Position numbers and translations under genes: made by a program. A DNA stretch of 63,913 nucleotides, the filler included, from Octopus bimaculoides (Eukaryota), in NCBI RefSeq assembly GCF_001194135.2. It is 4 parts of 4 records of this genome, joined end to end, with 100 filler letters (N's around TTAATTAATTAA, not from the genome) between each part and the next. Parts side by side here need not be neighbours in the genome. Positions count along the whole stretch, not along the records: positions 37,052 to 49,758 come from NC_068990.1; 3 more parts are not named here. The stretch is one strand, 5' to 3'. The notes beneath the pieces are model-generated. The model saw nothing but the letters and a program-made list of their open reading frames with translations, was not told the DNA's origin and did no database searches. Shown here piece by piece: positions 5,132 through 51,404 of this stretch. Each line of letters begins with the position of its first letter. Positions within the stretch are counted from its first letter, which is position 1.

Positions 5132-5137
5132 TTTATT
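5132..5137 (-). promoter_or_regulatory. Candidate polyadenylation signal of the MAM gene
   Basis: AATAAA on the - strand about 90 nt downstream of the TGA at 5226-5228. Confidence 0.4.
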
Positions 5138-5225
5138 GACAAACATGCTTCAATGTTTATATGTTACTAATCTTAACATGTTATAGTGTTACCATTTTAC
5201 AACTGTACGATGTGCAGAAGAGTTA

Positions 5226-6424: not shown

Positions 6425-7323
<899 letters not shown>

Positions 7324-7374
7324 TGTTCATCATCATCATCATTATCATCCTCCTCCTCCTCCTCCTCCTCATCA

Positions 7375-9504: not shown

Positions 9505-10320
9505 AAAACATACCAGCAGAGCAGGCACTTCAAAAGTAATGAAAGCAAATTTTACCAACAGCTGAACAATGAAGAGGAATATCAGGGGAATGATATGTCA
9601 GATACTGAAGTAGCAAGAATTCTTGAGAAAAGAAGTTCAACATAATATGGAGGCAGACTAGTTATGGAAATTTAGAAGTGAAATGGAAGCCAGAGCAAAA
9701 TAAGAAAATATAACTATTACAGATATGAGGATTAGATTGAGTGCATGAGCAGTGAGTTCACATGAAGGCAAAATTCACCTCCTTGTACCTTGAGGGTAGG
9801 CTCTGGCACATTGCTACCACCTCTCTCTCTCTCTCGACCCCTCCCTCTGACTGGGAGTAACCATGTATATCCTTTACAGTAAAACACCTGTTTCCCCTCA
9901 TAGCTTAACTTCTCATATCAACTAGTAAAAGAACACCTCCACAATACTACTCACCCTCTCAGTTGATGGATTTTTGTCTTGTCAGTTACTTCATGACCTC
10001 GCTGGTGCTGGTGCTAGGGCCATGTAAAAAGCACCCAGTACACTCAGTAAAGTGTAGGAAGAACATCCAGCCATAGAAACCATGCCAAAGAAGATAGCAC
10101 AGTTGTCTAGCTTGCCAGCTCCTGTCAAACCGTTCAACCCATACATGCATAAAAGATAGATGTTAAATGATGATAGTCACAGATAAGAAAGTGAAAAAGA
10201 TGGTTAAGAAGATACCAAACTGGAAAGTCAATGGACTAGATGGTGTTCAGGGATTCTTGCTAAAAATCTTCTGAGTACTCATGGTCATATACAATACAAT
10301 CTTTTCACATTGTTGGCAAA
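9505..10320 (+). mobile_element. R4/Dong LINE ORF fragments (about 9505-9760 and 10190-10320) split by another repeat
   Basis: FKSNESKFYQQLN..E...MSDTEVARI and VKKIPNWKVNGLDGVQGF resemble the R4-clade pre-RT F.TNQ.KFY..L and PNWKAPGPDGV.G motifs. Confidence 0.65.
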
Positions 10321-10376
10321 GGCTTTCTAATATATAACTTTAAATATATCTATATTATATGGTGCAGGAGTTATAG

Positions 10377-10430
<54 letters not shown>

Positions 10431-10884
10431 CTACAACTACTACGACGACGACGATGATGATGGCAACAATGATGATGATGATGAATGATGATAAAAATCT
10501 GTTTAAGAGTGCTTGGGACATTTAAGCAGAAGGGAATTTAGGCCACTGCTCTGAAAAATATTAACATTGATGAATTATCAATGTAATTAACATATTCATT
10601 AATGAAAGTGTATCGTTTTTGCTTCATATAATTATTATATGCCAAATGTATACACTAAATGGTTAAGTACTAAATGTGCTTGACCCAACAAAATGGTTGG
10701 GGCCAGCTCAAATGAACCTTGACTATAATTCCATAACCTCGATTTTTTCAATTTTTAATTTTCATTAACTTTCTTAAACTTTGTAAAAATTGCATAAACT
10801 TTATGTTAAAATATTCATTGTATTATAACCTTTAGTTTCATATAAGCATAATAATTTCATATAGCATAATAATTAATAATAATA

Positions 10885-11075
10885 ATGGTTTCAGATTTTG
10901 CCGCAAGGACAGCAATTTTGGGGCAGGAGATGAGTCGATTACAGTGTTCAACTGGTACTTATTTTATCGACCCTGAAAGGATGAAAGGTAAAGTCAACCT
11001 CAGCAGAATTTGAACTCAGAACGTAGCAGCAGGCAAAATACCACTAAGCATTTTGTCTGGTGTGCTAATGATTCT
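10885..11075 (-). mobile_element. tRNA-derived SINE family C (GAGTTCAAATTC..GAGGTYGACTTT.CCTTTCATCCTTTC.GGGTCGATAAA..AGTACCAG)
   Basis: Core recurs at about 13700-13800, 14070-14180, 23200-23420, 50040-50345, 53680-53780, 54540-55010 and 60970-61170. Confidence 0.75.
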
Positions 11076-12269
11076 GCCAGCTCACCACCTTAATAATTAT
11101 AATAGAAATATCTTTTCTAACATTCTTTACTCAAGAGTCTCTTCATGTTCACATTTCACTCGGATCTCTATTTTACTCTTACTTATCATCTCCCACTCCT
11201 CTTCTTTCTCTGTTTGTTTACTCTTTCTCCCACTTATTCTCCTCCCCTTTCTATTAGTCATTTCGTCTTTATATATCTACTTTTCTATCTGTCTCTCTTT
11301 CTTCTGTTTGTTTTTTTCTGTCTCCCATTCTTCCTCTCTCTATGTTTCTTTACTCTCTTTTCAACTCATTCTCCTTCACTTTCTGTCAGTTCTGTATCAA
11401 TCCTCCTGTCTGTCTATGAGTCCTCCCCTCTCTCTATATCTACCTTTCTGTCTGTCTGTCTGTCGTTCTCTCTCTCCCTCTCCCTCTTTTTATCTCTATC
11501 TCTGTCTTTCACTGTCTTCATTTGCATTTCCCTCTTACATTCTTCCTCCTACTACTACTGTAGCTTCCTCTCTTTTTCTTTTACACTCCCTCCTCTATCT
11601 CCCAAACATGCTTTATTACCCTTTCTTTCTTGTTTTCTCTGCGTATTCCTCTCTACCTTACAACACTAGAGAAGTTAAATTGCCCACCAGGTCATGTCTT
11701 CTCTCTGGTTACGTCTTGTCTCTTCCTTCTGGTGATCATCATCTGGTCAAATTTAATTAACACTATGTCCGAATTCTCATTAATTCATTAAATTAATACT
11801 TTTCTTTCTTTTCACTGAGCTCAAGGCTAACCTGAATAGTGAGAACAGAGGAGGTACAGATGTTATTATGAGAGATAACGTGATTGTTCGACTTGTTAGA
11901 AATAGGAGTTAGAATGCTCTCAAATCACTTCCTACTGTCCCTTAGGAAAGATGCATTTGATGATGTATTTCTAGACATACTGTATCAGAAATACAGAATG
12001 GCTGGTCAAGCTGAGCTGAAACATCTTTGATTGTAGGTCTGCTAACCCAGAAATGGTCTGGGGCTAAATAACCAGATATGTTTTATGTACAAAGTAATGT
12101 ACATATTTATGTAACACATGTATATTATACTAAAGTTAAATGAATGTACTGGTCAAGCACTTAACGTGCTTGACCCAACGAAATGTTGGGTCAAGCTCAA
12201 ATGAGCCTTGACTATATTTCCGTTACCTCGCCACACATTAGAAATAGATAGAAATACTGAATTTTTCAA

Positions 12270-13892: not shown

Positions 13893-14719
13893 CAAATTTC
13901 TACTAAAAACACAAGGCCTGAAATTTTGCGAAAGAGGATTAGTCAATTTTATTGACCCTGGTGTTTCACTGGTACTGAATTTATCTAATTTGAACCCAGA
14001 ATGCAAAGACAGATGAAATGCCACCGAGTGTTTTGCCGGACACAAAGCCTAAAATTTTAGGGGAGGGGTGTCTAATCGATTATACCAACCCTAGGGCTCA
14101 TCTGGTACTTATTTTACCGATCCTGAAAGGATTGACGGTAAAGTTGCCCGCGGCGGAATTTGAACTCAGAACATAAAAAGCAGAAGCTATTCTGCCAGAT
14201 TGCAACCTTAAACAACAACAACGTAACATCAACAACGATATCAAATAACATTGATGCAACAACAACAACAACAACAACAGCAGCAAAAATATGAACAACA
14301 ATATAGAAACAACATTGAGATCAATAATACCCAACAACAACAACAATCATAACTACAATGTTATAGAAGCATCATCATCCTGGTCATCATTTAATGTACT
14401 TGTTCCATGCTAGTGTGGGTTGATCTGTTTGATGCCAGCAGTTCAGAACTGCTGGCATCTCACCAACATGAGGTGGAAATAGAATGCAAATCTGGTAATC
14501 TTTGAAGCATCTTACATCACCTGAAGAAGATCTTTTGCACTGTGTTGCATCTAGTGTCATTACATTGTCCCACACTCACCAAGGTGCAGTGCAGAAGGAA
14601 GCCAAAACAATTGTTGTGCTAATAAATTCTTCGAGTTGCACTGCATCTTTCATTTTAATCAACAAAATCTTACATGGAAATCCCCTCCAGGGTCATACAG
14701 GCCATGGTTGAGAGCCACT

Positions 14720-14870
14720 GCTTTGAATCAACAGAAGGTTGGAATGGTAGTTTATTCTTAACCAAATATTTCTCCTGTAGTTTCCTCTCTACGAAGATCT
14801 CGTCTGCAGTGCCTCTTCCAGGGGCAAAACCATAACTGCATCTCATCCTGGTCTTCTTTGCCATGGAACA
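14720..14870 (-). mobile_element. RTE LINE reverse-transcriptase fragment
   Basis: YGFAPGRGTADEIFVERKLQEKYLVKNK resembles QFGF.PGRGT.DAIF..RQLQEKY. Confidence 0.7.
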
Positions 14871-15134
14871 ATTCTGCTATGACTTTTGCTGTGACCTTCA
14901 TAACCAGATTTAGTAAAGATTAACAAAAGCAACTGCCACAGCAATAACGACAACAAGAACAACCGCAACGTATTGCAGTATTGACTACCACATATAGAAC
15001 AATGACAATGACAACAGTAATTCCTACAGTCTTTGGAATAATAACAACAACAACAACAATAACAACAACAAATGAATTATTTTAATGTTTCTGGCATTTA
15101 AGAAATATGTTTGTAAAAGAATATAACATTCTTT

Positions 15135-16735
15135 GTGGTGGTGGTGGTGGTGGCTATGGTTGTAGTGGTGGTAGTGGTGGTGGTGGTTATGGTTGTAGTG
15201 GTAGTAGTGGTGGTGGTGGTTATGGTTGTGGTGGTAGTGATGGTGGTGGTGGTTATGGTTGTGGTGGTGGTGGTGGTGGTGGTGGTGGTGGTAGTGATGA
15301 TAGTGGTAGTGGTTGTGGTGGTAGTGGTGGTGGTGGTGGCTATGGTTGTGGTGGTGGTNNNNNNNNNNNNNNNNNNNNNNNNNNNNNNNNNNNNNNNNNN
15401 NNNNNNNNNNNNNNNNNNNNNNNNNNNNNNNNNNNNNNNNNNNNNNNNNNNNNNNNNNNNNNNNNNNNNNNNNNNNNNNNNNNNNNNNNNNNNNNNNNNN
15501 NNNNNNNNNNNNNNNNNNNNNNNNNNNNNNNNNNNNNNNNNNNNNNNNNNNNNNNNNNNNNNNNNNNGATAGTGGTAGTGGTTGTGGTGGTAGTGGTGGT
15601 GGTGGTGGCTATGGTTGTGGTGGTGGTGGCGGATATGGTTGTAGTGGTAGTGATGGTGGTGGTGGTGGTGGTAGTAGTAGTATTGCTGTGTGATAGTAGT
15701 AATAATAGTAGTAGAGGTGATGGTACTAGTGGTGGTGCCTGTAGTAGTGGTCATAGTAGAAGTATTTATGATTGTAGGGGAGGTGGTAGTATTAGTATTA
15801 GTAATAATAGTAGTGGTGGTGGTGGTGGTTGTAGTTGTGATCATAGTAGAAGTATTTATGACTGTGGAGGTGGTGTTGATAGTAGCAGTAGTAGTATTAA
15901 TTGTGGTGGTAGTAGTAGTTGCAGTCATTGTACTAGTAGTGAAGGTGATGATAGTGGGAGTTGTAGTAGTAGTTGTAGTAGTGGTTGTGGTGATGGTAGT
16001 ACTAGTAGTAGTGGTGGTAGTTGTAGTAGTAGTAATATTTGTGATTGTAGTGGTGGTAGTACCAGTAGTGGTGATGGTGGTGGTAGTAGTAGTGGTGGTA
16101 GTTGTAGTAGTAGTAATATTTGTGATTGTAGTGGTGGTAGTACCNNNNNNNNNNNNNNNNNNNNNNNNNNNNNNNNNNNNNNNNNNNNNNNNNNNNNNNN
16201 NNNNNNNNNNNNNNNNNNNNNNNNNNNNNNNNNNNNNNNNNNNNNNNNNNNNNNNNNNNNNNNNNNNNNNNNNNNNNNNNNNNNNNNNNNNNNNNNNNNN
16301 NNNNNNNNNNNNNNNNNNNNNNNNNNNNNNNNNNNNNNNNNNNNNNNNNNNNNNNNNNNNNNNNNNNNNNNNNNNNNNNNNNNNNNNNNNNNNNNNNNNN
16401 NNNNNNNNNNNNNNNNNNNNNNNNNNNNNNNNNNNNNNNNNNNNNNNNNNNNNNNNNNNNNNNNNNNNNNNNNNNNNNNNNNNNNNNNNNNNNNNNNNNN
16501 NNNNNNNNNNNNNNNNNNNNNNNNNNNNNNNNNNNNNNTAGTGGTGGTAGTACCAGTAGTGGTGGTGGTAGTAGTAATATTTGTGAGTGTAGTGGTGGTA
16601 GTACCAGTAGTGGTGATGGTGGTGGTAGTAGTAATATTTGTGAGTGTAGTGGTGGTAGTACCAGTAGTGGTGATGGTGGTGGTGGTAGTAATATTTGTGA
16701 TTGCAGTGGTGGTAGTACCAGTAGTGATGGTGGTG

Positions 16736-16768
<33 letters not shown>

Positions 16769-16930
16769 CTGAACATGATGAACATTGAGAAGCTTACAAT
16801 GATGATGATGACAGTGATGGTGGTGGTGGTACAGGTGATGATTATGATGATAATGATGATGATAATGTTGCATATACTGCTGCTGATGATGATGTCAATA
16901 TTGATTATAACAACTACACCCACCATTCCA
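15135..16930. repeat. GGT/AGT/TGT cryptic trinucleotide array with 54-81 bp higher-order units
   Basis: Unit AGTAATATTTGTGA(T/G)TGTAGTGGTGGTAGTACCAGTAGTGGTGATGGTGGTGGT repeated on both sides of a gap. Confidence 0.9.
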
Positions 16931-17054
16931 CCATGACCATCACTAATCACAATAGCAATAATAAAATAATAATTTTTTTGACAAATTCTTTTCATCTTTT
17001 CAAAAAACGAATTTGAAATTTTAACATTTATTAAAATTATTTTCTACTCCAATT

Positions 17055-17090
<36 letters not shown>

Positions 17091-17775
17091 CTTTTCTTTC
17101 TTTCTTTTCTTCTTTTCATTCGGAAAACTACTTTTTTTTTTAAAAAAAAAAGAGAAAATTTCTTTTCTTTATTTTGCAAAAATCAACATAATTTTTTATC
17201 AGATTTTTATATTTTTAGCACACTTCAGAAAATGTATTTTTAGTTGGCAAATTTCGCCTTTTCTAGAAAGGATTCCCATGTTTGTTCCATCAACATCCGT
17301 TCTTTTTTAACCCATGCCGGCATGGGTTAGATGGAGAGATATTCGAGGCAGGATTTATACAGCTGAATGCTCTTCCTGTTGCCAAACCCTTACCTGTTTT
17401 GTCATTATCATCATCTTCATTGTCGTTTAATGTCCGTTTTTCATGCTGGCATGGATTGGACACTTTGACAGGATTTGGCAAACCAGAGGGCTGCACTGTG
17501 CCCCAGTATCAGCTTTGGCATGTTTTCTACAGCTGAATGCCCTTCCTAATGCCAACCATATCACAGAGCATACTGGCTGCTTTTTTTCATGCAGTGAGCA
17601 CAAATAAGGTTACAAGCTAAGCTGTAAGATAGAAAAGAACAACACAGAGAAAAGACCTTATCACTAAAGTATGATAGAAGGGACAATTTCCACATTTTCA
17701 ATCAAGATTTATTAGTTACTATGGTGATGGCACTACCTATCTCTCTATCTATTTATTTATCTATCTATCTATCTA

Positions 17776-18713
17776 GCGCATCCTCTTCCGCTTCTTGTGG
17801 AAAGGAAGCGTTCCGATGGTTAGGCGATCCGTTTGCTGCCAACACCCGTTAAAAGGAGGACTGGGCATGCCGTGGTTGATGATGCGCAGACACGCGCTGA
17901 GACTGCGACATCTCCGGCTCTACGTAGACAGCGGTGAACAGGTGTGGTCACCGTTTGTGCGGCGCGCTTTCCCGCAGCTCGTCTCCATGACCGAACTGCA
18001 GTCATGGATCAAGAAGAGGCCGAGGAAGGGCGAATGGCACCACGAGTGTCGCGCTGCTCTTCGGCAACTCCAACAACCCGGGTCAACCTTGAGCGACTGC
18101 ATCACAACTNNNNNNNNNNNNNNNNNNNNNNNNNNNNNNNNNNNNNNNNNNNNNNNNNNNNNNNNNNNNNNNNNNNNNNNNNNNNNNNNNNNNNNNNNNN
18201 NNNNNNNNNNNNNNNNNNNNNNNNNNNNNNNNNNNNNNNNNNNNNNNNNNNNNNNNNNNNNNNNNNNNNNNNNNNNNNNNNNNNNNNNNNNNNNNNNNNN
18301 NNNNNNNNNNNNNNNNNNNNNNNNNNNNNNNNNNNNNNNNNNNNNNNNNNNNNNNNNNNNNNNNNNNNNNNNNNNNNNNNNNNNNNNNNNNNNNNNNNNN
18401 NNNNNNNNNNNNNNNNNNNNNNNNNNNNNNNNNNNNNNNNNNNNNNNNNNNNNNNNNNNNNNNNNNNNNNNNNNNNNNNNNNNNNNNNNNNNNNNNNNNN
18501 NNNNNNNNNNNNNNNNNNNNNNNNNNNNNNNNNNNNNNNNNNNNNNNNNNNNNNNNNNNNNNNNNNNNNNNNNNNNNNNNNNNNNNNNNNNNNNNNNNCG
18601 ACACCACCACTTTTTTTTTTTTTTTTTTTCCTTCCTGCCCCCTCCCAAAAAGAAAAGCTCTACATTGTATTTGTCCCATCTTCGTTGAGCCCTGTGTGGC
18701 TAATAAAAGAAAT
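17776..18713 (+). mobile_element. 5'-truncated L1/Tx1-clade LINE (ORF2 post-RT region and 3' end), middle in gap
   Basis: RILFRFLWKGSVPMVRRSVCCQHPLKGGLGMPWLMMRRHALRL matches the FLW.G...V....P...GGLG.P signature; 3' end GCTAATAAAAGAAAT; (ATCT)n on both sides. Confidence 0.8.
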
Positions 18714-36917: not shown

Positions 36918-39893
36918 TACATGCACACACACACACATATACACACACATGNNNNNNNNNNNNNNNNNNNNNNNNNNNNNNNNNNNNNNNNNNNNTTAAT
37001 TAATTAANNNNNNNNNNNNNNNNNNNNNNNNNNNNNNNNNNNNNNNNNNNNAGGGGAGGGGAGGAGGTGGAAGAGGGAAGGAGGTGGAAGAGGGGAGGAG
37101 GAGGTGGAAGAGGGGAGGAGGAGGAGGAGGAGGAGGTAGTGATCGTGTTGGAGATGGCAGTGATGATGCTACTAGTGGTGATGCTGGTGGTGATGGTGAT
37201 GATAATACTGATAACACTAATCAATTAACCCTCTCCCCTTAAATTGAAGGACATGATTATTATTTTGATGAAGCATAAAATGAAATTTATAAATTATAAA
37301 GAATGTCATGAAAAGAATCGGTGTTGTAACTTATTAGTTCATAGTTCTGTGGGGAGTTGTTAAATGATCAATTCGACCTTATGATTTGCTAGATCATGTA
37401 GTTGAGAACTAATTTTGCAGTTGAGTGCTTTTTTCGATTACGAACGCCGAGTATTCGAATGTCATCAGCCTAACTGTAAATGTATCTATCGGATTTGATA
37501 TCATAGATTCCTTTGTTTGTGTATTAACCAGGGGAGAAATGGTTGGAACAATATATCTGGTACTTAAAGATCCTCACAGACTAGTGAGGTCAATGCAGTT
37601 GCTATTTTCCGTATTTCAATGTCTGTAGTAGAAACGTGAGCAAGAAGAGACTCCTAGAAAAACATCCCCGTCGAAGAACAATTGGGTAAAGTATTTAGTT
37701 GACGATCTAGAGCAAAAGAAGAATACTCAGCACACTTACTAGGGTCCATTGGTGTGTCAATATCTGCCGATTAGTGAAATGTGTATTGACAGGGAGGTGA
37801 ACACTGCACCAATGTAGCACCTACTTTAGCTTTGTCGATGGTCAACAAGTGATCAAGCTTGTGACATATTCTAGCCGTGAAAAGATCAAAATATAGTCTT
37901 TGGGTACATACTTTGTGAAAATACAGTATCGGTAGTCACTGAGAAGACAGAGAGGCGGGGGGAATTCAATATGAAGGAAAATGATACGTTGTTTACGATT
38001 TTTCCATGATGTTTGGAATTGTGAGGATGCTATACTGACTGTTGACTGAGTGAGGGAGTTTGTCCTTCCTAGGAATGCAATGCACTCAGTGCTGGATTTA
38101 CCATTGTGCTTAGGTGTGCTTAAGCACAAGGTCCCATTAAGGGACTCCTCCTTCCTGCCCCCAAAATCTTTACGATGAATTTTTCAAATGTCAAATGAAA
38201 AACGTAGCTAGGAAGCCTGTCCTTACTAATTTATTTACTACTTTACTTTTCAAAACAAGAATAAAGAAAAAATAATGCCAAAAGAAAAAAAAAACCCAAA
38301 ACATATATCTCTGAAGCTGGTCATAAAATTCCCTAGGAAATTTCGTAGAAAGATGAAAGAAATAATACTGAGAAAAGGCAATGTCAGCAACAACAACAAA
38401 AATGACGCCGACAGCAGCAACGACAAATTTAAAAGAATACATACATATATACACATATGTATATATATATAGGCAAATAAAAACAAAATCAATGAAAGCC
38501 AAAAGGATGTACACAGTGAATGCGTTATGCTGACGTTCAGTTTAAGATGACAAACGGACACACACACAAACACTCCTACTTGGCGTTGGTATCAAAGTAC
38601 ACTGTTCACTGATCCCCAGAGAATAATTGAAGACCATATGCATGTGTGTATGTATGTACATGTGCATACGTTTATCTATTTGTCTGTCTGCCTAGTTATG
38701 TATGCGCACACACATACATATATATGTATATGTATACGTGTGGTTATATATATATATATATATATATATATNNNNNNNNNNNNNNNNNNNNNNNNNNNNN
38801 NNNNNNNNNNNNNNNNNNNNNNNNNNNNNNNNNNNNNNNNNNNNNNNNNNNNNNNNNNNNNNNNNNNNNNNNNNNNNNNNNNNNNNNNNNNNNNNNNNNN
38901 NNNNNNNNNNNNNNNNNNNNNNNNNNNNNNNNNNNNNNNNNNNNNNNNNNNNNNNNNNNNNNNNNNNNNNNNNNNNNNNNNNNNNNNNNNNNNNNNNNNN
39001 NNNNNNNNNNNNNNNNNNNNNNNNNNNNNNNNNNNNNNNNNNNNNNNNNNNNNNNNNNNNNNNNNNNNNNNNNNNNNNNNNNNNNNNNNNNNNNNNNNNN
39101 NNNNNNNNNNNNNNNNNNNNNNNNNNNNNNNNNNNNNNNNNNNNNNNNNNNNNNNNNNNNNNNNNNNNNNNNNNNNNNNNNNNNNNNNNNNNNNNNNNNN
39201 NNNNNNNNNNNNNNNNNNNNNNNNNNNNNNNNNNNNNNNNNNNNNNNNNNNNNNNNNNNNNNNNNNNNNNNNNNNNNNNNNNNNNNNNNNNNNNNNNNNN
39301 NNNNNNNNNNNNNNNNNNNNNNNNNNNNNNNNNNNNNNNTCAGAGTAGTACCAGGTCATTTTACTACTATCAAAATGTTGAGGAATTAAAACCCTAGGTA
39401 TATGGGTCAAATAGGTTTTTTTCTTTTAGTCTGAATAGAGTATCAGTATAGTTATACAGATAACAATATTAGTTTAACCAATATTTTCACAATAAGAGGT
39501 ATGTTAATAAAATAAATAAAAAGAGATGTAATTATTTTATACAAAAATCATGAAATAATGTCATTATTGAATTCAGGGGCTATAGATAGGGTGTAAAGTT
39601 TAAGGATATTAAGTGTACTGGGTTCATGAGAACTATTTTGAATTATCTTAAAAAAATTATAGCTGAAAATAAAATAATGATACTATTTAGGAGACACATA
39701 GGTAAGCTTTATTTTTATAATGTGAATAAAAATTATTATCGGATTTATATTAGTTCATAATAATGTGTTTACTAAGGTTTAAGGGACTGAAAAAAGAAAA
39801 GATGCTAGGAAATAACAAGGATATTCAATACAGGAACCTGATTATTGATTTAAGTAGATTAAATGTTAAGGTGAGAGATCAGGAATATATATT

Positions 39894-39927
<34 letters not shown>

Positions 39928-41136
39928 GTGTACATATATACATGCGTGTGTATGTATATATATAGTTATATTTTTATATATAACGTTGACCACTAACGTG
40001 GACATTCAATGTGCTAGAAATAGATCACATCTTGTGTCTACTAAGACTTAAATTGTTCTCAAAACGAAATTTAGCGGAATACCAAAGCGTAAGTGGGCAA
40101 GACATTTAAAATTACCGAAAAACATCATTATTAAACAGGGACCGGTTTCGAAATTAACAATCTTACCGACTGTCTGTTTCTCTTCAGCCTATTCGTAATG
40201 TAACCATAATCCTCAGAACCCAATACAAAATTGCCCACCGTCATAGGTGCACGTGTATGTGGTTCTGTTAATTACAGCGTAATGGTAAAATTCAAAGATC
40301 TTCGTTTTGGCGCGCTAATTCCAGGAATATGTCTGCAGAAAATATGTACTGCGTCGCATATATCCAGTTTGAGAACTTGGTTATGGTTAATACATTAACA
40401 TAGGGTAAAAATCATATATTAATTAATACCGATTAATTACCAGGAAGCTAGCACATTTAAAGAATCAAAGAGATTCAGAAACAATATCTGCAATTACCCT
40501 ATGTTAATATATATAGTTATATGCATCGATTCGTTTTTTACTCTTATTTCTAGCAATGCTGGTATTATTTTATACCCTGGTTTATTAATTTGCGTTTAGG
40601 TTTTAATTGCTAACGGGCCGNNNNNNNNNNNNNNNNNNNNNNNNNNNNNNNNNNNNNNNNNNNNNNNNNNNNNNNNNNNNNNNNNNNNNNNNNNNNNNNN
40701 NNNNNNNNNNNNNNNNNNNNNNNNNNNNNNNNNNNNNNNNNNNNNNNNNNNNNNNNNNNNNNNNNNNNNNNNNNNNNNNNNNNNNNNNNNNNNNNNNNNN
40801 NNNNNNNNNNNNNNNNNNNNNNNNNNNNNNNNNNNNNNNNNNNNNNNNNNNNNNNNNNNNNNNNNNNNNNNNNNNNNNNNNNNNNNNNNNNNNNNNNNNN
40901 NNNNNNNNNNNNNNNNNNNNNNNNNNNNNNNNNNNNNNNNNNNNNNNNNNNNNNNNNNNNNNNNNNNNNNNNNNNNNNNNNNNNNNNNNNNNNNNNNNNN
41001 NNNNNNNNNNNNNNNNNNNNNNNNNNNNNATATATATATATTAATAAATTATAGGGTAGCAAAAAAAATTTTAGAAATTTTATTTACCACCAGTGGTCCA
41101 GCGAGAGTAAAAAAAAACAGTCAATAGACTATGTAT

Positions 41137-41215
41137 TATTCATTTAAAATGCAGAGATGCCTATTTCTAGCGAGTAGATGTCCTATTATAGGCATCTCTG
41201 CATTTTAAATGAATA
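41137..41215. repeat. Perfect 28-bp inverted repeat with 23-nt loop
   Basis: TATTCATTTAAAATGCAGAGATGCCTAT / ATAGGCATCTCTGCATTTTAAATGAATA. Confidence 0.9.
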
Positions 41216-41579
41216 TATATGTGTGTGTGTGTGTGTGTTAAGAGGGGCTTTTTATTTAAACAGTTTACATGAAAATGTTCAAAATAGGTAGTAAAATAAA
41301 TTTATAATTATTTTAAGTTCATCAAGAATCATGGTTGTATAGAAGCATATATACAGGAGGAAATATATTTAAGTATTTATACAGAATTCTAGAGGAATGA
41401 CCAACCTTTCCATCCATCATCTCCTGTTTTGTAGTGTGTATATGAGAAATGCTTGCTATTTTTAGAAATGGTGTAGGAGGTTGATTCGTTGATGGTGGAG
41501 AGCATTGTGGAATCAAAAGGATTTTTTGTTTCTAGGTTAGTCTGTCATAGTTCAGTGGTTTGAGAGACTGAGAGTTCAA

Positions 41580-42776
41580 AATAGTGTGAGTCTGTGTGTT
41601 TCTGTGCACGTTTCTATGTGTGTGTGTACATATATGTGCTTGTATTTGTGTATGGGTTTTTTCATTGGTCTTAGAGTTCAAGACCATGAAAATGGGTATA
41701 AGACCCATGAAAATTCAAAGAGTTCCGTATGGGGTGTGTATGGGTTTGTGTATGTGTGTTTTATATTTAGCAGGATGGTGCGTGAATGTGTGCACTTTTG
41801 TGTGTGTGTATATGTGTGATTCGTATTTGTCAGGGGTGCTGTGTGAGTGCATGTGTGTGTGTGTGTTTGTTCGTGTGTGTGTATGTTTGTGTGTGTTGTG
41901 TTGGTGGGGAGGTTATATGCGTGTACGTGAGTATGTGTGTGTCTCTGAGTATGTTTGTGTTGTAATTGTCCGGGTGGTGTGGTGGAGAGGTAGTGCAACC
42001 GTATGTGTGTGTGTGTGTGAGGGTGCATATGTATGTGTGGGTGTGTATGTGTGTGTTGTATTTGTCAGGGGTTCGGTGTGTATCTATGTGTGTTACGTTT
42101 ATCCGGGTGGTGTGTACGTGTGTGCGTGTACGTACTGTGCATGTTTGTACTGAGTATGCGTTTATGTGGGTGTGGTTTATGTAGTTTTCGGGTGTGTATG
42201 CACATGTGTGTGTGCTATATTTGTTGTGGCGAAGTGTGTGTGTGTGTGTGTGTGTGTACGTGTGGGTGTATTTGTGTGAGTGTGTTGTCTATGTGTCTTG
42301 TATTTGTCAGGGTGGTGTGTGTTATTGTGTGTGTGTGTATGTTATTGTGTGTGTGTGTGCGTGCTTGTCTGTGTATATATGTGTGTATGTGCGTGTGTCT
42401 GTCAGTGTTTGTTGGGATTGTATTGCGTGTATATATGTGAGCGTGTGTGTGATTTTTTACTGTGGAACGGGCATATTGTGTTTGTGTACATATGTGTGTA
42501 TATATATGCGTGTGTGNNNNNNNNNNNNNNNNNNNNNNNNNNNNNNNNNNNNNNNNNNNNNNNNNNNNNNNNNNNNNNNNNNNNNNNNNNNNNNNNNNNN
42601 NNNNNNNNNNNNNNNNNNNNNNNNNNNNNNNNNNNNNNNNNNNNNNNNNNNNNNNNNNNNNNNNNNNNNNNNNNNNGGTATTTGCGTGTTTGTGTGTGTA
42701 TATGTGGGTATGTTTGTGTGAGTGTGTCTTGTATTGTCAGGGCGGTGTGTGTAGGTATGTGCCTGTGCATGTTTAC

Positions 42777-42826
<50 letters not shown>

Positions 42827-43050
42827 TGGTTGTGATTGCTAGAATCGTATTGCATGTGAATATATGCATGTGTTTTTTCTTGGAATGTATGTGAGTTTGT
42901 GCTCGAGCGTATGGATATTGTGTTTGTGCATGTGTGTGTGTTTGTGTGGGAGGTTTGCATTGTATTTGTGCGTGTGTTTGTACATCTGTGTGTGTTTCTG
43001 TGTGCATTTGTTGTGGATGTGTACCTGGGGGGGGATATTAGAGTATGTTG
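41580..43050. repeat. Degenerate (TG)n-rich low-complexity tract inside the hAT element
   Basis: Direct inspection; its ORFs are C/V/Y-rich artefacts. Confidence 0.9.
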
Positions 43051-43590
43051 AGTTGTGGCCTATATAGTTTCACTCGTGCGGTACCATATATATATATATA
43101 TTATATATATATATAGGAGAGATAGAAGGGGTGGAGAGAGAGATTTCACAAAAGAAATCATTCTGTTCCTTCCATATTTTCGCCAGACTGATCTCCAAGT
43201 TTGTCAGTTTTTTAGGATAACGGTAAGAAAATTTTCATATTTTCTGTAACTGGTAATTTCACAGTTTAGTATTGATCAAATAATTGCAATGTAAAAAAAA
43301 TCCTATAATGTGAGCATGCCTTAAGTTGGCTTTATGCAGTGAAGTATATGCTGTATGTTTGTTATATCGTATAACAGTGTTTGTGTGTGTCATTGTTATT
43401 CATTAAGTATTTTTGTTTAGTTCGATCTAGTTTGTTGCAAGTTTTTATCCAACTTTCTGTTTTAATTTTTGATATTATATTGTTAATTCTTTTGTTAATT
43501 TATTACATATTGATTTGAAATTTGTATTATTAGGTTCTTAGAATCGAACTCAACCAACTGATACTCTTCTCCAGCTCTTTAATCGTAACA

Positions 43591-46143
43591 ATGAGTAGAC
43601 GTTACGAAAGTAGTGCAAGTAAAAGAAAACGTCAAAAAGAACAAAAAGATATAATTAAACGTTTAAAGCCAATCACATCATTTGGCTTTGCACACTCGGA
43701 ACAAACGGGTTCAGCAGCAGATACAGAAGATTCAGATACATTACTTGGCACCCGGGAGCATTTGTCAGTAACATAACTCCAAGTACTGATTTCCTTGTCA
43801 AGATTGATGTAGGTTTATGGACCATATTGAACAATGAAAAAATTTCATTTCGGATTGAGAAAGTTTGTTTATTTCTCCTCATGTTGTACACGACTTGAAC
43901 AGAAAGTGGTCCCCTCTTCGAACCACTCTAGTGTCTCTAACATTACCCTGATGAGGAGGGACAAATCTCACTCGCACAAAGCCTAGTCCTACCGGGAGTA
44001 ACTTTTAAACAAACAAACACTGCTCCAGTAGTAACAGTCAATCTAATTGGGATGGACCTTTCACAACTTCGAAGCAAACCTACAAAAACCAAACTCGTTC
44101 ATGCTCAAGAAGTTTATTCTTCTCCACTAAAATAAATAGAGAAACCTACCCTTGGGAATGGCTAGTATATTACCCAACAAAAGGAAAAGTCTACTGTTTT
44201 GTGTGCAAACTTTTCTCAAAATTCTCTGAGAACGTTTCTTCAACTACAACTCTAGCTTCTTCAGGATTCGATAACTGGTCTCAATCTTAAATTATTAAGA
44301 CCCATGAAAATTCAAAAGATCACATGGCCTACTTAACAAGAAAACGTGGTCAGACGCTTACAACAAAGCTTGATGAGCAAATCAAAGCAGAACATGATTT
44401 CTGGAAGCGTGTACTTCAGCAGGTGATGACAGTGATTTACTTGTTGAGAGAACGTGGATTGGCTTTTAGAAATGATGAAACTTTCTGCTGCCCAAACAAC
44501 GGAAACTTTCTCGGTTTGCTGGAATTGATTGCCAAATTTGATCCCTTCTTACGTACCCACATAAATCAGTATGAAAATGAAGGCCATACATCATACCTAT
44601 CCAAAACCATATGTGAAGAAGTTATCCAGCTAATGGCTAAAATAGTTCTTGAAGAAATAGTGAAAGAAATCAAAGAAGCAGGTTATTTTAGTGTATCGGT
44701 CGATTCAACGCTTGATGTTTCCAATGTTGATCAACTCACTGTAATTGTTAGACATGTTTCTTCCCTTGATGGAATACCAGTTGAACGGTTTTTGACATTT
44801 ATTGAACTGAAGAATCACACAGGTGAAGAAATGGTTGAATTGATACCGAATTTCTTTGAAGAACTTGAAATTGATTTCAGAAACTGCAGGGGTCAATCAT
44901 ATAACAATGCAGCAAATATGGCTGGAAAGTATAATATAATGGCGTTCAGCAGAAAATTCTGGAAAAGAATAAGTTTGCAAAATTTATTCCCTGAGCTGAA
45001 CATTACCTAAATCTGGTTGGAGGAGCTGCAGTTGACTCTTACCTTGATGCAGTGAATTTCCTTGGCGTTGCCAATGAACTTTATTGCTTTTTCTCAGCAT
45101 CTACAAGACTGTGGGCAGTGCTGAAAAAACTTCTTTCCACCAGTGTCAAAAGCTCCGCAACAGTTATCTAACACAAGATAGGAAGCCCATGCCAAGAGCT
45201 ACGACAGCCATCAGTGCAAGTTACGCACACATTGTTGGAGCTCTCAGTCACGTCCATGATGATGACACTGAAATGGTTGACACTAGACGACAAGCTCAAA
45301 ATATTTTGCAGAAAAATGGAAGAATTTGAATTTGTGCTCATGCTTCATCTATGGACAGGTTGGCTTGAGTAGTTTCACTAAGTAATGCCTTTCAAAGTGC
45401 ACAGATTTCATTGACCAATACAGTTCATATCTGCAATTTGTTTCCAGCATATGGGAAAACTTTGATGAGATTGAGGAGCAAGCAAAAACTACTCTACCTG
45501 ATGTAGAGTACAGAAGCCTCCAAAGAAGGCGTAGAAAACGACAACACAGTGATGGCAGTGCAACTAAAGCTTTGGATGAAATTCTTCCAATGGATAATTT
45601 TAGGATATATTCATTTATTCCTATAACTGATACTCTTCACTCAAATTTAGACAGAAGAGCTATTGTGTATATGAATGAGTATTGCTGACAATTTCTCGTT
45701 TTTAATTGATCTGCAAGTGACGAGGGAGCAAATTTTCCATTGTGTCAAGAAACTAGAATAAGAATCCCCAAAGAATGTTGATCTGTCTTGTTGATGAACT
45801 CTTGACTTTCCACTTGTATGTCAAACAGGCTCATGCAGAAAAAGAAAGCTTCAGCCACCAAGACGTGTACAAAATAATAAAACAGGAGAAAATTCAGACA
45901 GTTTTCCCAAATGTGGAAACAATTTTTAGATTGTTCCTGTGTTTGATGGTCACTAACTGTTCTGGACAGAGATCATTTTCTAGACTGAAAAGGATCAAAA
46001 GTGACCTTCATTCAACAATCTCACAAGAGAGGCTGTCTGTCCTGAGTATTCTCTGTATAGAGAATGATAAACTGCGACCTATTGATTTTGATGAAATTGT
46101 TGATGAGTTTGCAGTCAGGAAATCTCGAAGGAAGATGTTCTGA
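43591..46143 (+). pseudogene. Disrupted hAT transposase (ZMYM1-like: TTF-type zinc finger, DUF4371, hATC dimerisation)
   Basis: EWLVYYPTKGKVYCFVCKLF; GLAFR...GNFLGLLELIAKFDP; YLSKTICEEVI; FSVSVDSTLDVSNVDQL; CRGQSYNNAANMAG; FPNV..RLFLCLMVTNCSGQRSFSRLKRIK....ISQERL. Multiple frameshifts and stops. Confidence 0.92.
43860..44048. repeat. 189-bp perfect inverted copy of 47052-47240
   Basis: Position x pairs with 91100-x; no mismatch found by eye over 189 bp; the match stops at 43859/47241 and 44049/47051. Confidence 0.92.
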
Positions 46144-46574
46144 CATTAAATAGCCTACTGTAAATGTATAATGACTGTCCTGTCTGTTCACTTTTTATCA
46201 AGTTTGACTACTTCATCATGTGGCCTGTGTAAGTTCAAAAATTTGACTGACTTGTTTTTAAAAAAATAATGATTAATCTGGTAACAGGTAATAGTTTAAC
46301 TACCCCTAAATTTCCTGAGCATCTCTTAAATCCAGCACCGAATGCACTGGTGTGTATTCCTGTAAATTGGAAAAGAAGCTTTTAGAAGAGATTGCGAGTA
46401 GAATTATCCGACTTAATAATCTGTGGAACTCATTTGAAATGTAACTGAATTTATCGACCAGAGTTTTGTTTTGTTTTTGTTTTTATTATCGGGGGTGGCG
46501 GGTTGGGTTTCTTTCTGATGGATAATGACAAATCATATTATGTTTCAGCTGGAGATTTTTAACCGATTTTCATT

Positions 46575-46765
46575 ATGGTCCGAAAAATTTGCGTACTAGG
46601 AGCTGGAATTATTGGTCTCTACTCGGCTGTACGAATTCTTGAAGACTTACAAAATGTTGATGTTACGATTATTGCTGAAAAATTTTCTCCGAACAACACA
46701 ACCGACGTGGCTGCTGGCTTCTGGAGACCCTATAAAATGGGCTCCACAAACGCGTTACTAATCAA
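46575..46765 (+). CDS. D-amino-acid oxidase / D-aspartate oxidase family (DAO/DDO), first coding exon
   Basis: [53 protein letters not shown]: GAG.IG FAD motif plus the family TTDVAAG.W.PY motif; donor AA|GTAAGT (phase 2); upstream acceptor tatgtttcag at 46548. DAO versus DDO cannot be resolved from one exon. Confidence 0.92.
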
Positions 46766-47217
46766 GTAAGTTGAAACGATTTCTCTATTTTTTCGTTTTG
46801 CCTGTGTAAATGTAATTCAGTTTAAAGGATGAATGCTGCATATTTGAAGAACATATTGCCGAGTTGAAAACCTAAAATAGCAGGTGACTGTGGGAAACTT
46901 CTGAGTCATTAGTTCATGACCTGTTATAGGCAGCTTCTTTATATTTTATCAAGACAATTAATACTACTAGCTTCTGATCGCCTCGCTAACTTGTAGTTGG
47001 CATTTCTATGTAAAAACTGGTACCATTCATTTAAATAAAAACAGAGAAATTAATTAGATTGACTGTTACTACTGGAGCAGTGTTTGTTTGTTTAAAAGTT
47101 ACTCCCGGTAGGACTAGGCTTTGTGCGAGTGAGATTTGTCCCTCCTCATCAGGGTAATGTTAGAGACACTAGAGTGGTTCGAAGAGGGGACCACTTTCTG
47201 TTCAAGTCGTGTACAAC

Positions 47218-47587
47218 ATGAGGAGAAATAAACAAACTTTATGTTAGTTCAAATATGTTTGTGACATATTTAAACTTCTAAAGGCAGTTCCACTACAGCT
47301 TAACATCCAGAAAATATTCTTGCATATGGTAAAAGATGTAAAAACGCCTTATCGGTTTATTTCTCATCATTGCTTGGCGCTGCTACTACAATATGAGGAA
47401 GGCTAAGGAGCCAGAAACATGTCTATCAGTCCGATAGAGTGTGACGTTGAACAGATAAGGTGTTTTTACACCTTTTACCATAGGTGATAATTTTCTTTCG
47501 CTCCACGATATCAGCAGAGAAATTACTTTAGAAGTTAAAATATGTCACATATTTGAACGAACAAAAAGTTTGTTTATTTCTCATCAT
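47218..47587. mobile_element. Foldback/MITE with ~62-bp TIRs and an inner 29-bp inverted pair
   Basis: 47218-47283 pairs with about 47526-47587; 47325-47353 pairs with 47454-47482 (27/29). Confidence 0.82.
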
Positions 47588-49039
47588 AGATATTTTAACT
47601 ATGAATTGCAATGCCTTATTTTATCTACTTAATTACTAAGAATGCCAATCGGAAGGATTCTTGGATTATTCAGATCAAGCGAAGAAGAAGCCCTACTGTT
47701 TCTGTACATAACGTTTGTTCTCGTCTGTCTGAATATTTACTCTCAGTTATGGTCGCCATATTAAATTAATGGAAGAATAGAGACAATACAACGGCTTCAA
47801 TGAAACAGCTGCGCTACTGAGAGAGAAATAGACGGAGCTAAGATTCTACTGCTCGGAGCAAAAAAAATCGATTAAAATAAATATGATTCTTAGTTGATTT
47901 CAAATCAGGTGAAAAGAAAAATAATTTTAAATTGGTATACAGATTAATGGATTTGCAAATGACTATATATGTTTGTATGTTACTATATATATAAGAGTGT
48001 ATACATATATTTACATATGTGTGTTGGGGTGTGTGTGAAATATAAATATATATATATATTTATATTTCACACACACCGCAACATATATATATGTGTGTGT
48101 GTGTGCGTGTGTGNNNNNNNNNNNNNNNNNNNNNNNNNNNNNNNNNNNNNNNNNNNNNNNNNNNNNNNNNNNNNNNNNNNNNNNNNNNNNNNNNNNNNNN
48201 NNNNNNNNNNNNNNNNNNNNNNNNNNNNNNNNNNNNNNNNNNNNNNNNNNNNNNNNNNNNNNNNNNNNNNNNNNNNNNNNNNNNNNNNNNNNNNNNNNNN
48301 NNNNNNNNNNNNNNNNNNNNNNNNNNNNNNNNNNNNNNNNNNNNNNNNNNNNNNNNNNNNNNNNNNNNNNNNNNNNNNNNNNNNNNNNNNNNNNNNNNNN
48401 NNNNNNNNNNNNNNNNNNNNNNNNNNNNNNNNNNNNNNNNNNNNNNNNNNNNNNNNNNNNNNNNNNNNNNNNNNNNNNNNNNNNNNNNNNNNNNNNNNNN
48501 NNNNNNNNNNNNNNNNNNNNNNNNNNNNNNNNNNNNNNNNNNNNNNNNNNNNNNNNNNNNNNNNNNNNNNNNNNNNNNNNNNNNNNNNNNNNNNNNNNNN
48601 NNNNNNNNNNNNNNNNNNNNNNNNNNNNNNNNNNNNNNNNNNNNNNNNNNNNNNNNNNNNNNNNNNNNNNNNNNNNNNNNNNNNNNNNNNNNNNNNNNNN
48701 NNNNNNNNNNNNNNNNNNNNNNNNNNNNNNNNNNNNNNNNNNNNNNNNNNNNNNNNNNNNNNNNNNNNNNNNNNNNNNNNNNNNNNNNNNNNNNNNNNNN
48801 NNNNNNNNNNNNNNNNNNNNNNNNNNNNNNNNNNNNNNNNNNNNNNNNNNNNNNNNNNNNNNNNNNNNNNNNNNNNNNNNNNNNNNNNNNNNNNNNNNNN
48901 NNNNNNNNNNNNNNNNNNNNNNNNNNNNNNNNNNNNNNNNNNNNNNNNNNNNNNNNNNNNNNNNNNNNNNNNNNNNNNNNNNNNNNNNNNNNNNNNNNNN
49001 NNNNNNNNNNNNNNNNNNNNNNNNNNNNNNNNNNNNNNN

Positions 49040-49273: not shown

Positions 49274-51404
49274 ATATCTATAATATCTAATATTGATATC
49301 TAATATCTAATATTGATATCTATAAATTTCCCATACTTAGTATATGTATAACAATACTGATGCTTTATTCAGACTAAAGAAAAAGCCCTGTTGACCTAAA
49401 TGCTTAAAGTTTTAATTCCCCAACATTATGATAGCAGTAAAAAACCTAACTTAAAATAGTGTTGCCACTCTGACCAGAGAAACCTTTATAACTATATCCA
49501 TGTATAATGCTTACAACTTTCCTTTCCTTAGAAGGGATTGCCCTTTATACTATAACCACTAGATAAGAGACAATAAAATCAGAGACAGTTAGAATTCTAC
49601 CTAAAACTAATTACTAGTCTGCTAGCCTTGGCTATGTCAAGATGGATTTTTATGTATTCTTCTTCCCACTTGGATTTTGAATGTTGCCACAATTATAATA
49701 TGTCTATTCTACTGTAATTTTTCTACATTTTTGTGCAGCTGAAGATTGTTCTACATATNNNNNNNNNNNNNNNNNNNNNNNNNNNNNNNNNNNNNNNNNN
49801 NNTTAATTAATTAANNNNNNNNNNNNNNNNNNNNNNNNNNNNNNNNNNNNNNNNNNNNCAAAATTATTACCTGAAGATGATGAGAGGAACAGATCGGCAG
49901 AATCGGTAACGCACAGGTGAAAATATCTTGTGGCATTTCGTCTCGAATAGTTATACATTCTTAGTTCAAATCCCGCTGAAGTCATCTATGCTGCTCGTCT
50001 TTCCGAGAGCTGAGTCGCTAAAACACAGACCAATAAAATATTGATTTCAAATTTTGGCACAAGGCCAGCAATTTCGGGGTGGGGTGGTGTGAGTCGGTTA
50101 CATCGAACCTCCTCCCCCAGTACACAACTGGCACTTATTTTATCGACCCCCGAAAGGATGAAAGACAAAGTCGACTTCGGCGGAATTTTAACACAAAACG
50201 TAAAGACGGACGAAATGCCACTTAGTATTTTGTCCGGCATGCTAAAAAAAGCAAAATGTTTAGTAGCATTTCGTCCGTCTTTTACGTTCTAAATTCAAAT
50301 TCCGCCAAAGTTGATTTTGCATTTCATTCTTTTGGGGTCGATCAAATATTGGTATCTATCCAATCGAATGCTTGCTGCGCATGCCTGAGCTTGTGTCTTT
50401 GTTAGAAAACATAAATAAAAGACAACAACTGAAGAAGATGCATAGCCCAGAGGTTCGGATGTTACACTCACGATCGTAAGGGCGTGGTTTCAGATCCTCG
50501 GACCACGGGCTGCGTTGAGATGTTTGAGCAAAATATTTCATTTCTCGTCGCTCCAGTCCACTGCAAACGGACTGGAGGAACTACTGATTCTGCTCACGCT
50601 ATGCAAAGCGGATAACCGGTCCTATTGTAACCTTGAACTCAAGCCAGGACTTGCATTTTAACACAGACTGAGGTAGTTTAGTTTTATTTTATTTTATCTT
50701 CTCAGGCGCAGGAGTGGCTGTGTGGTAAGTAGCTTGCTTACGAACCACATGATTCTAGGTTCAGTCCCACTGCGTGGCATCTTGGGCAAGTGTCTTCTAC
50801 TATAGCCTCGGGTCAACCAAAGCCTTGTGAGTGGATTTGGTAGACGGAAACTGAAAGAAGCCTGTCGTATATATGTATATGTATATATATATGTGTGTGT
50901 TTGTGTGTCTGTGTTTGCCCCCCACCCCACCCCCACCGACATCGCTTGACAACCGATGCTGGTGTTTTTACGTCCCCGTAACTTAGTGGCACGGCAAAAG
51001 ACACCGATAGAATAAGTAGTAGGTTCACAAAGAATAAGTCCTGGGGTCGATTTGCTCGACTAAAGGTGGTGCTCCAGCATGGCCACAGTCAAATGACTGA
51101 AACAAGTAAAAGAGTAAAAGAGTAAATAAACAAAATGAATGTTAATGCCAGTGATATTTTCGTATAGGTCTGCTGTTACATATTTCACGGCATGCTATAA
51201 CATTGCTCGTTATAGAAGTTAAGTACCCCGTGCTATGAAAGATGGATCGTACCTCTTGTAGTTTGTTATTAACAGCGAAACTAAAACAAAACAATCAAAC
51301 AATCGCCTCAAAGAACAACGGAATAATAAGTAAATTATTATATATATATATATAAATTTGTTTTTTGTCAAAACTCACGGGATGGCGGAAAGGTTATAAC
51401 TATA

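Follow-up and report, generated by a model that had tools for sequence, protein, structure and literature searches.

The oxidase exon, a transposase pseudogene and a foldback element

The window analyzed here is a composite stretch of DNA of 63,913 nt, filler included, and the locus of interest lies in a 12.7-kb piece of it that belongs to the Octopus bimaculoides chromosome record CM046610.1. This piece carries the first coding exon of a gene of the D-amino-acid/D-aspartate oxidase family (positions 46549-46765, + strand), identified by a Pfam DAO match, matches to PDB entries and conservation. The exon consists of 26 nt of 5'UTR followed, from the ATG at 46575, by 63 codons and 2 nt. It is preceded by an acceptor (TTATGTTTCAG/C, with the AG at 46547-46548) and followed by a donor (CAA/GTAAGT, with GTAAGT at 46766-46771). 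These are the borders that had been proposed in the sequence-only reading, namely an acceptor at 46548, a donor at 46766 and an ATG-containing exon of 217 nt.

The 64-aa ORF of the exon narrowly exceeds the threshold of the Pfam DAO profile (28.1 bits versus a cut-off of 27.9) and aligns with residues 2-60 of D-amino-acid and D-aspartate oxidases of solved structure (PDB, E-values from 3.5e-10 to 8e-9). It has the GxGxxG motif (VLGAGIIG, including GAGIIG) of the N-terminal FAD-binding beta-alpha-beta fold. D-amino-acid and D-aspartate oxidases cannot be told apart from 64 residues, and this exon is the only one of the gene in the piece. A protein search with the exon peptide returned only four genomic ORFs of 64-92 aa and no full-length transcript-derived oxidase, and the gene structure was not found in the literature on octopus D-aspartate oxidase. 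The coding part of the exon is 94.8% identical to that of a contig from a related species (L001), the part that precedes the ATG is identical at 25 positions out of 26, and the introns are 81-87% identical. Furthermore, a contig from a distant taxon (L002) has the same length from ATG to donor (191 nt) and also has a pyrimidine tract and an AG before the ATG. Since an acceptor located just before the ATG is thus conserved in three taxa (O. bimaculoides, its close relative and the distant taxon), an upstream non-coding 5'UTR exon is plausible. The public gene on CM046610.1 starts at the ATG of the exon.

Upstream of the exon, positions 43591-46143 (+ strand) harbor a dead transposase pseudogene of the hAT superfamily, recorded publicly as LOC106875504 / A0A0L8GPF7. 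It matches the Pfam domains DUF4371 (2.8e-16) and Dimer_Tnp_hAT (2.3e-08), and tblastn shows it to be colinear with transposases of 545-856 aa. Like the DUF4371 / FAM200-ZBED5 (ZMYM1-like) hAT transposases, it has a DUF4371/RNase-H-like core and a C-terminal hAT dimerisation domain. In contrast to these elements, its reading frame is not intact: it includes at least four in-frame stops (44288, 44992, 45169 and 45370), several frame changes (43806, 44045, 44935, 45419 and 45766) and an insertion of 182 nt. Its ends were not found either: when 42690-43595 was scanned against 46150-46345, neither terminal inverted repeats nor an 8-bp target-site duplication turned up in convincing form; these ends may have decayed or may lie within an assembly gap. 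The same scan applied to a near-intact hAT from another organism (L004) also found no ends. The public gene models on the hAT of the window splice around its defects.

Downstream of the exon lies a foldback element of 370 nt (47218-47587, no strand assigned), a long imperfect palindrome made of the inverted pairs I24, I14 and I25. Its termini (47218-47258 and 47547-47587, pair I24) are 41 nt long and 93% identical, and the whole element is predicted to fold on itself at -141.6 kcal/mol. Terminal inverted repeats and small size make it MITE-like. Its flanks (GTACAACA and AGATATTT) differ and thus show no target-site duplication, and no further copy was detected in about 50 kb of cephalopod-like DNA. 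L001 carries the same element with a central insertion of 114 nt. No Rfam family reaches its gathering score, the sub-threshold miRNA-like matches being AT/TG-rich hairpins and the foldback scoring 31 bits versus 117.

Two identical arms of different age

Two segments, 43860-44048 (upstream arm) and 47052-47240 (downstream arm), both described on the + strand, are 189 nt long each and 100% reverse-complementary, with a spacer of 3003 nt. Identity breaks off abruptly at all four ends, and a perfect match of this length within 12.7 kb cannot have arisen by chance. Between the upstream arm and the exon lie 2500 nt, and 286 nt separate the exon from the downstream arm; the bracketing of the exon by two perfect 189-bp inverted copies, as first noticed from the sequence, is thus borne out. 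The same holds for the overlap of the foldback with the downstream arm, as the left terminal 23 nt of the foldback are the last 23 nt of this arm. Being part of the downstream arm, these 23 nt were also copied into the upstream one. The copied block, which includes 166 nt of unique intron and 23 nt of foldback terminal repeat, has no transposon-like ends. It crosses the boundary between unique intron and foldback, and neither to the hAT nor to the foldback do the arms belong as units. The possibility that they are the terminal repeats of the hAT itself was rejected, the transposase ORF flanking the upstream arm on both sides.

Comparison with L001, whose colinear orthology served as a neutral baseline, gives the polarity of the duplication. 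This orthology extends over 46322-48025 on the + strand (blastn, 82.5% identity over 1111 columns and 79.3% over 653 columns), and the alignment runs colinearly through 46322-47394, crossing both ends of the downstream arm unbroken. The identity of this arm to L001 (80.8%) equals that of the intron background (81-87% for the surrounding segments, versus 94.8% for the exon), and the downstream arm is therefore an ordinary stretch of ancestral intron evolving at a neutral rate, and the source of the copy. Beyond 46320, homology ceases and L001 continues with 141 nt of unrelated sequence that match nothing in the 12.7-kb piece; as they end in (GAT)4, these nucleotides may represent the tail of a retroposon. 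The upstream copy matches the downstream version of O. bimaculoides at every position and is only 80.8% identical to that of L001; it was therefore made after most of the divergence between the two species. With 0 differences in 182 nt, compared with 19% between species, our own arithmetic places the copying roughly within the last tenth of the divergence time.

The upstream arm interrupts the transposase frame, which encodes DVGLWTILNNEKISFRIEK as far as 43862 and NWDGPFTTSKQTYKNQ from 44045 onwards; in hAT homologues, 6-7 residues (GPSEIQ / GPADCQ) separate the two. Depending on the intact transposase used as tblastn query, homology resumes at 44045-44057 (for instance, at 44045 with P0007 and at 44051 with P0010 and P0011). 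Compared with the near-intact hAT of L004, which is a 74%-identical element of another organism and not the consensus of the element's own family, homology extends to 43863 and starts again from 44046, and 18 nt (GTCCTTCGGAAATTCAAC) are missing. The empty site GAGAAAG/GTCCTTCGGAAATTCAAC/ATTGGGATGG of L004 thus corresponds to GAGAAAG/182 nt/ATTGGGATGG in the window. A protein search with the zinc-finger stretch beside the junction returned no closer hAT copy. The unambiguous inserted core (43864-44045) is the reverse complement of 47055-47236 at 182 positions out of 182, or 189 out of 189 when the junction microhomologies common to the arm and the hAT, AAAG (43860-43863) and ATT (44046-44048), are included.

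Alternatively, the arms could be two old copies, either independent insertions of a repeat family or the ends of a composite transposon carrying the exon, kept identical by gene conversion. Conversion can take place between inverted repeats separated by 3 kb, and a third copy of the 23-nt arm end is present at 47565-47587, besides a weaker one at 47348-47370. However, these 23-nt matches are the terminal repeat of the foldback itself, the arm has no defined ends in L001 and no target-site duplications at its flanks, and the upstream arm interrupts the hAT ORF instead of bounding an element. Moreover, neither L002, L004 nor the remainder of L003 yielded a copy in a search for the arm as a dispersed repeat, and independent insertions are incompatible with 100% identity, the copy in question being 19% diverged between species. 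This explanation is therefore extremely improbable. A metagenome scan for an arm pattern conserved between species found nothing.

The quality of the assembly also has to be considered. The sequence comes from a scaffold assembled from short reads, which has four N runs in 12.7 kb (38772-39339, 40621-41029, 42517-42676 and 48114-49039), and the chromosome-level record has the identical sequence and the same gaps, so that the identity of 100% is a statement of the assembly. Short-read assemblers can collapse near-identical copies, and the true identity of the arms may consequently be slightly under 100%. Repeat collapse yields exact identity, and the upstream arm could even be an artefact, or differing copies could have been merged into one consensus, in which case the perfect repeat would not exist as written. 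Nevertheless, this arm sits inside a gap-free block of 5.4 kb (42677-48113), and its novel junctions, with microhomologies of only 3-4 nt and a deletion of 18 nt, bear the signature of biological repair; a k-mer graph or a gap-closer would need junction-spanning reads to yield them. We thus regard an artefact as decidedly unlikely. An exact look-up of eight ORFs of the window, three of which span arm junctions, found none of them in a searchable collection.

Templated repair as the probable origin of the upstream arm

The best explanation of the whole, to which we give a probability of roughly 0.78, is that a single sequence was copied once by template-switch repair, leaving a structural mutation and not an evolved device. 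The insertion is recent and lineage-specific, and it is most likely neutral. Because 182 nt stand in place of 18 nt of the hAT, with AAAG and ATT as microhomologies, we infer template switching as the mechanism. A break or stalled synthesis would have occurred inside the dead hAT pseudogene, which precedes the first coding exon by 2.5 kb. The 3' end (GAGAAAG) would then have annealed, via the 4-nt microhomology AAAG/CTTT, at 47237-47240 in the hairpin-prone terminal repeat of the foldback, and 182 nt of the opposite strand would have been copied. A return to the hAT via the 3-nt microhomology ATT, with the loss of 18 nt of the hAT, would have produced the perfect inverted repeat that brackets the exon.

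Known systems that generate templated insertions include FoSTeS/MMBIR, synthesis-dependent MMEJ and the 'filler DNA' found at internal deletions of Ac/Ds-type hAT elements. As in these systems, the upstream arm has a nearby identical template (182/182) and replaces a small deletion by a nearby copy, with microhomologies of 3-4 nt at both junctions and a recipient loss of 18 nt (as judged against the 74%-identical hAT of L004). The polarity agrees as well, the downstream copy being syntenic in L001 while the upstream one interrupts the transposase ORF. The template here is an inverted one that begins at a hairpin-prone repeat, at a distance of 3 kb along the same chromosome. At 182 nt, the insertion is long compared with those of the polymerase-theta type. 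The enzymology cannot be deduced from one event. The host hAT was probably already dead before the insertion, and the involvement of a transposase is therefore not implied. An inversion heterozygote, also considered as a source, fits the left junction and does not fit the right one with its 18-nt deletion.

Predicted pairing across the exon and its significance

The two arms are predicted to cofold at -367 kcal/mol. In a predicted fold of the 3.85 kb from 43800 to 47650, 171 of the 189 arm positions pair with the partner arm, and about 18 nt go into the foldback. The sequence-only reading anticipated that the foldback hairpin would compete for 23 nt of the arm; the overlap is 23 nt, of which the predicted fold assigns about 18 nt to the hairpin. 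The transcript context, and with it any consequence for RNA, is something that we infer: because the acceptor of the exon is conserved, a transcription start of the oxidase gene upstream of 43860 is plausible, and the arms of a pre-mRNA starting there would pair over about 171-189 bp.

Intronic reverse-complementary repeats are established as flanking circularised exons, as reported by Jeck 2013, Zhang 2014 and Ivanov 2015 (ref. 14 of PMC9699675); inverted Alu pairs are the mammalian example. The octopus arms resemble inverted Alu pairs in that they flank a short exon within a few kb, on both sides, and in that their predicted pairing is strong enough to juxtapose the splice sites. Unlike these pairs, which are two members of a dispersed family, the octopus pair is a single-copy local duplication, perfect over 189 nt, and its upstream arm is only putatively intronic. 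The arms can also be likened to the inverted-repeat dsRNA that is hyper-edited by ADAR, since a long near-perfect intramolecular duplex is predicted here in the species for which the strongest hyper-editing signal has been described (Porath et al. 2017, PMC5625713). This likeness of the predicted duplex to an ADAR substrate depends on both arms being co-transcribed.

The two arms could be seen, as in the sequence-only reading, as a regulatory switch, in which both would be included in one oxidase pre-mRNA and their pairing would measurably alter the processing of the ATG exon, be it by forming a circle in which 46765 is joined to 46549, by skipping the exon or by a modulation that depends on editing. 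The placement of the arms around the 217-nt exon, comparable to that of the inverted repeats of circularised exons, the very strong predicted pairing, the upstream exon implied by the conserved acceptor and the competition of the foldback for about 18-23 nt of the arm all agree with this proposal. However, neither arm is conserved above the neutral rate, and the protein search gave no transcript-derived protein with this exon. Furthermore, circRNAs are low overall in O. vulgaris, which has been ascribed to ADAR antagonism, and editing occurs mostly in introns and in 3'UTR hairpins, intronic hairpins being mainly edited (PMC9699675). O. bimaculoides shows a hyper-editing rate that is exceptionally high, and loci able to form long near-perfect dsRNA are very common in its genome (4.4e-3 of loci; PMC5625713). 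On balance, such a switch is unlikely. The geometry, the conserved acceptor and the predicted pairing on which the exon-switch reading was built stand, while the switch itself lacks evolutionary support, because the downstream arm is neutral and the upstream arm is a recent accident in a pseudogene.

If the duplex forms in octopus, its most likely fate is hyper-editing by ADAR, and any back-splicing or loss of the ATG exon by skipping would be minor at most. It is highly improbable that it measurably diverts transcripts to a 217-nt circle or to exon-skipped non-coding forms, with hyper-editing by ADAR setting the balance. The arms thus look real but ordinary, that is, like the product of a repair accident and not like an evolved switch or a conserved regulatory structure.

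Loss of the exon at 46549-46765 would abolish the FAD-binding start of the protein. If the insertion proves to be a polymorphism and both arms are transcribed together, nature would provide at this locus a clean experiment on how a perfect duplex, ADAR editing and back-splicing interact, and polymorphism would offer a presence/absence test of the antagonism between ADAR and circRNA in the most heavily editing animal known; otherwise, the insertion is one neutral structural variant among thousands. Our analysis also shows that a transposase pseudogene underlies two public gene models (LOC106875504 and A0A0L8GPF7). Moreover, an inverted repeat flanking an exon can arise in one local template-switch step, without two transposon insertions. 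Local template switching is one concrete way in which the unusually high load of such loci, as reported for octopus, could build up.

Oxidase exon and ancestral intron

The two arms, at 43860-44048 and 47052-47240, are 100% complementary over 189 nt, with a spacing of 3003 nt (repeat search). Direct string comparison re-verified their identity, and the match ends sharply at all four ends. They enclose a transposase-like region and an ORF (46575-46769). A MITE-like foldback (47218-47587; 41-nt termini, 93%), with a predicted self-fold of -141.6 kcal/mol, shares 23 nt with the end of the downstream arm according to the repeat search. Complementary arms flanking an exon of 217 nt, with a foldback overlapping one arm, had been claimed by the sequence-only reading, and these features are all borne out.

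The ORF matches Pfam DAO and aligns with solved structures of D-amino-acid and D-aspartate oxidases over their residues 2-60. Therefore, it belongs to an N-terminal coding exon, with a GAGIIG FAD-binding motif. Splice-site reading places this exon at 46549-46765 (217 nt), between the acceptor TTATGTTTCAG/C (AG at 46547-46548) and the donor CAA/GTAAGT (GT at 46766). The DAO-family gene on record (CM046610.1, GCA_001194135.2) begins exactly at the ATG of the window. A pyrimidine tract and an AG closely precede this ATG in the window, in a related-species contig (L001) and in a more distant relative (L002), in which the ATG-to-donor length is 191 nt, as in the window. The conserved acceptor and the 96% conserved 26 nt before the ATG suggest a non-coding exon farther upstream; the region 37052-43590 is without a gene-like ORF.

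L001, retrieved with the exon peptide (94% amino-acid identity), is 1973 nt long and stems from a sequencing run of the related species. It is colinear with 46322-47394 and 47394-48025, and its alignment crosses both ends of the downstream arm without a break. Nucleotide identity is 83.7% in the upstream intron, 25/26 nt in the exon part before the ATG, 94.8% in the CDS (five synonymous and four non-synonymous codon changes), 87.5% in the intron from exon to arm, 80.8% in the downstream arm, 81.1% in the foldback and 86.5% further on in the intron. By this comparison, the exon is under constraint and the downstream arm is not; the arm is ancestral intron and the foldback is likewise ancestral. 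L001 also carries, at 1-141, directly upstream of the shared intron (window 46320), an unrelated sequence ending in (GAT)4 that is possibly a retroposon tail, and a 114-nt insertion (1229-1343) in the middle of its foldback copy.

Other repeats were recorded nearby. An AT/TG-rich palindrome (48003-48100; 42 nt, 93%) gives serial miRNA-like Rfam matches below threshold (best 44.6 bits, gathering score 80) and was rejected as a recognised RNA family, being a low-complexity hairpin; no Rfam family reaches its gathering threshold. Two sequences in inverted orientation, separated by about 10 kb (39359-39462 and 49341-49442; 63 nt at 79% plus 44 nt at 86%), both adjoin assembly gaps and probably represent two copies of a dispersed repeat.

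An interrupted hAT pseudogene

Pfam detects DUF4371 and a hAT dimerisation domain in the window, and a profile-free search retrieves thousands of relatives, among them intact transposases (836-877 aa). In tblastn, colinear homology begins at the inner end of the upstream arm (44045-44057 in the various homologues) and extends to 46140. Directly beyond the outer end, 43806-43862 encodes DVGLWTILNNEKISFRIEK, whose counterpart in the transposase homologue P0007 is DVGLWNTLTKDDISFWVQK. Apart from this interruption, the element (43591-46143) is dead as well: stops lie at 44288, 44992, 45169 and 45370, and the frame changes several times. Its transposase ORF is identical to two O. bimaculoides database proteins, LOC106875504 (281 aa) and UniProt A0A0L8GPF7 (278 aa), which are a pseudogene annotated as protein; over 44324-45688 (10001-11365 of the CM046610.1 piece), the models skip stops through GT-AG introns (44929 to ~45448, or to ~45095).

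A search for hAT termini at the locus (42690-43595 against 46150-46345) and in L004, a contig from another organism, found none, and a protein search for closer copies with the zinc-finger stretch beside the junction gave zero matches. A 21-nt perfect direct repeat, TAAGACCCATGAAAATTCAAA, occurs at 41699-41719 and 44296-44316 (within 41664-41722 and 44274-44318). Whereas the downstream copy belongs to the hAT coding sequence (IKTHENSK), the other lies in a hAT-like fragment of about 50 nt within a TG-rich tract 2.6 kb upstream; this fragment may be a second hAT remnant or a further small templated patch. Directly upstream of the hAT, 41550-43050 is a TG-rich degenerate minisatellite with recurring TTGTCAGGGTGGTGTGTG and strong GC and AT skew.

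Origin of the upstream arm

L004 (ENA) served as empty-site reference. It carries a near-intact homologous hAT (74% nucleotide identity over 2.1 kb), flanked on both sides, on the opposite strand, by LINE-like reverse-transcriptase/endonuclease ORFs (3936-7405 and 14045-18182). Its uninterrupted site reads GGATTGAGAAAG/GTCCTTCGGAAATTCAAC/ATTGGGATGGACC, and the window reads GGATTGAGAAAG/182 nt/ATTGGGATGGACC. Relative to L004, the recipient site has thus lost 18 nt and gained 182 nt, with microhomology common to hAT and intron template (AAAG left, ATT right). No difference separates the inserted block from the downstream arm of O. bimaculoides, whereas it is only 80.8% identical to that of L001; its copying from the downstream arm therefore postdates most of the species divergence. 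With none of the 182 nt changed, as compared with a divergence of 19% between species, the event would fall roughly within the last tenth of the divergence interval, by our own arithmetic, which ignores gene conversion and assembly collapse. The copied unit is not a transposon; the 189-nt block comprises 166 nt of unique intron and 23 nt of foldback terminal repeat. The upstream arm is best read as sequence recently inserted into a dead hAT.

An assembly artefact could also produce a second arm. The chromosome-level record around LOC106875504 (CM046610.1, GCA_001194135.2) is identical to the window piece, N gaps included, and is no independent check; an exact look-up of window ORFs in the collection found no independent same-species sequence. 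However, overlaps of 3-4 nt are insufficient for an assembler to build such junctions, and the arm lies inside a 5.4-kb gap-free block; an artefact is therefore improbable. Elsewhere, the largest "inverted repeats" of the repeat finder and a 226-copy "direct repeat" (38752-39180, 40621-41049) are N runs, i.e. assembly gaps.

For the young insertion, the small deletion, the inverted copy and the 3-4 nt microhomology at both junctions point to template switching, which, during break repair or replication, would yield such a deletion and an inverted copy from 3 kb away. Known types include FoSTeS/MMBIR and synthesis-dependent end joining. Filler DNA occurs at internal deletions of Ac/Ds-type elements and is comparable to the templated insertion in this hAT. 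Copying would have started within the terminal repeat of the hairpin-prone foldback, which in this single case fits exposure of a single-stranded template there. This arm is a well-documented example of templated inverted insertion.

RNA pairing and its possible consequences

As RNA, the arms are predicted to cofold at -367 kcal/mol. In the predicted minimum-energy fold of 43800-47650, 171 of the 189 arm positions pair with the partner arm and the foldback hairpin is retained, taking the remaining end of the arm, in agreement with the competition that had been proposed. The arrangement resembles the exon-flanking inverted repeats of circRNA biology and ADAR substrates. A metagenome scan for a cross-species conserved arm pattern gave zero matches.

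The suggestion that the arms form a candidate ADAR-editing or back-splicing switch is borne out in part, for structure and predicted pairing potential; a putative function as a switch lacks evolutionary support. Since one arm evolves neutrally and the other is recent, an adaptive switch is unlikely. In O. bimaculoides, the hyper-editing rate is exceptionally high and 4.4e-3 of loci are able to form long near-perfect dsRNA (PMC5625713). In O. vulgaris, editing affects mostly introns and 3'UTR hairpins, and overall circRNA levels are low, an observation that the authors ascribe to repression by ADAR (PMC9699675). Should both arms lie in one transcript, hyper-editing of a neutral duplex would be expected; the ATG exon might also be circularised or skipped to a substantial degree, but this is less likely.
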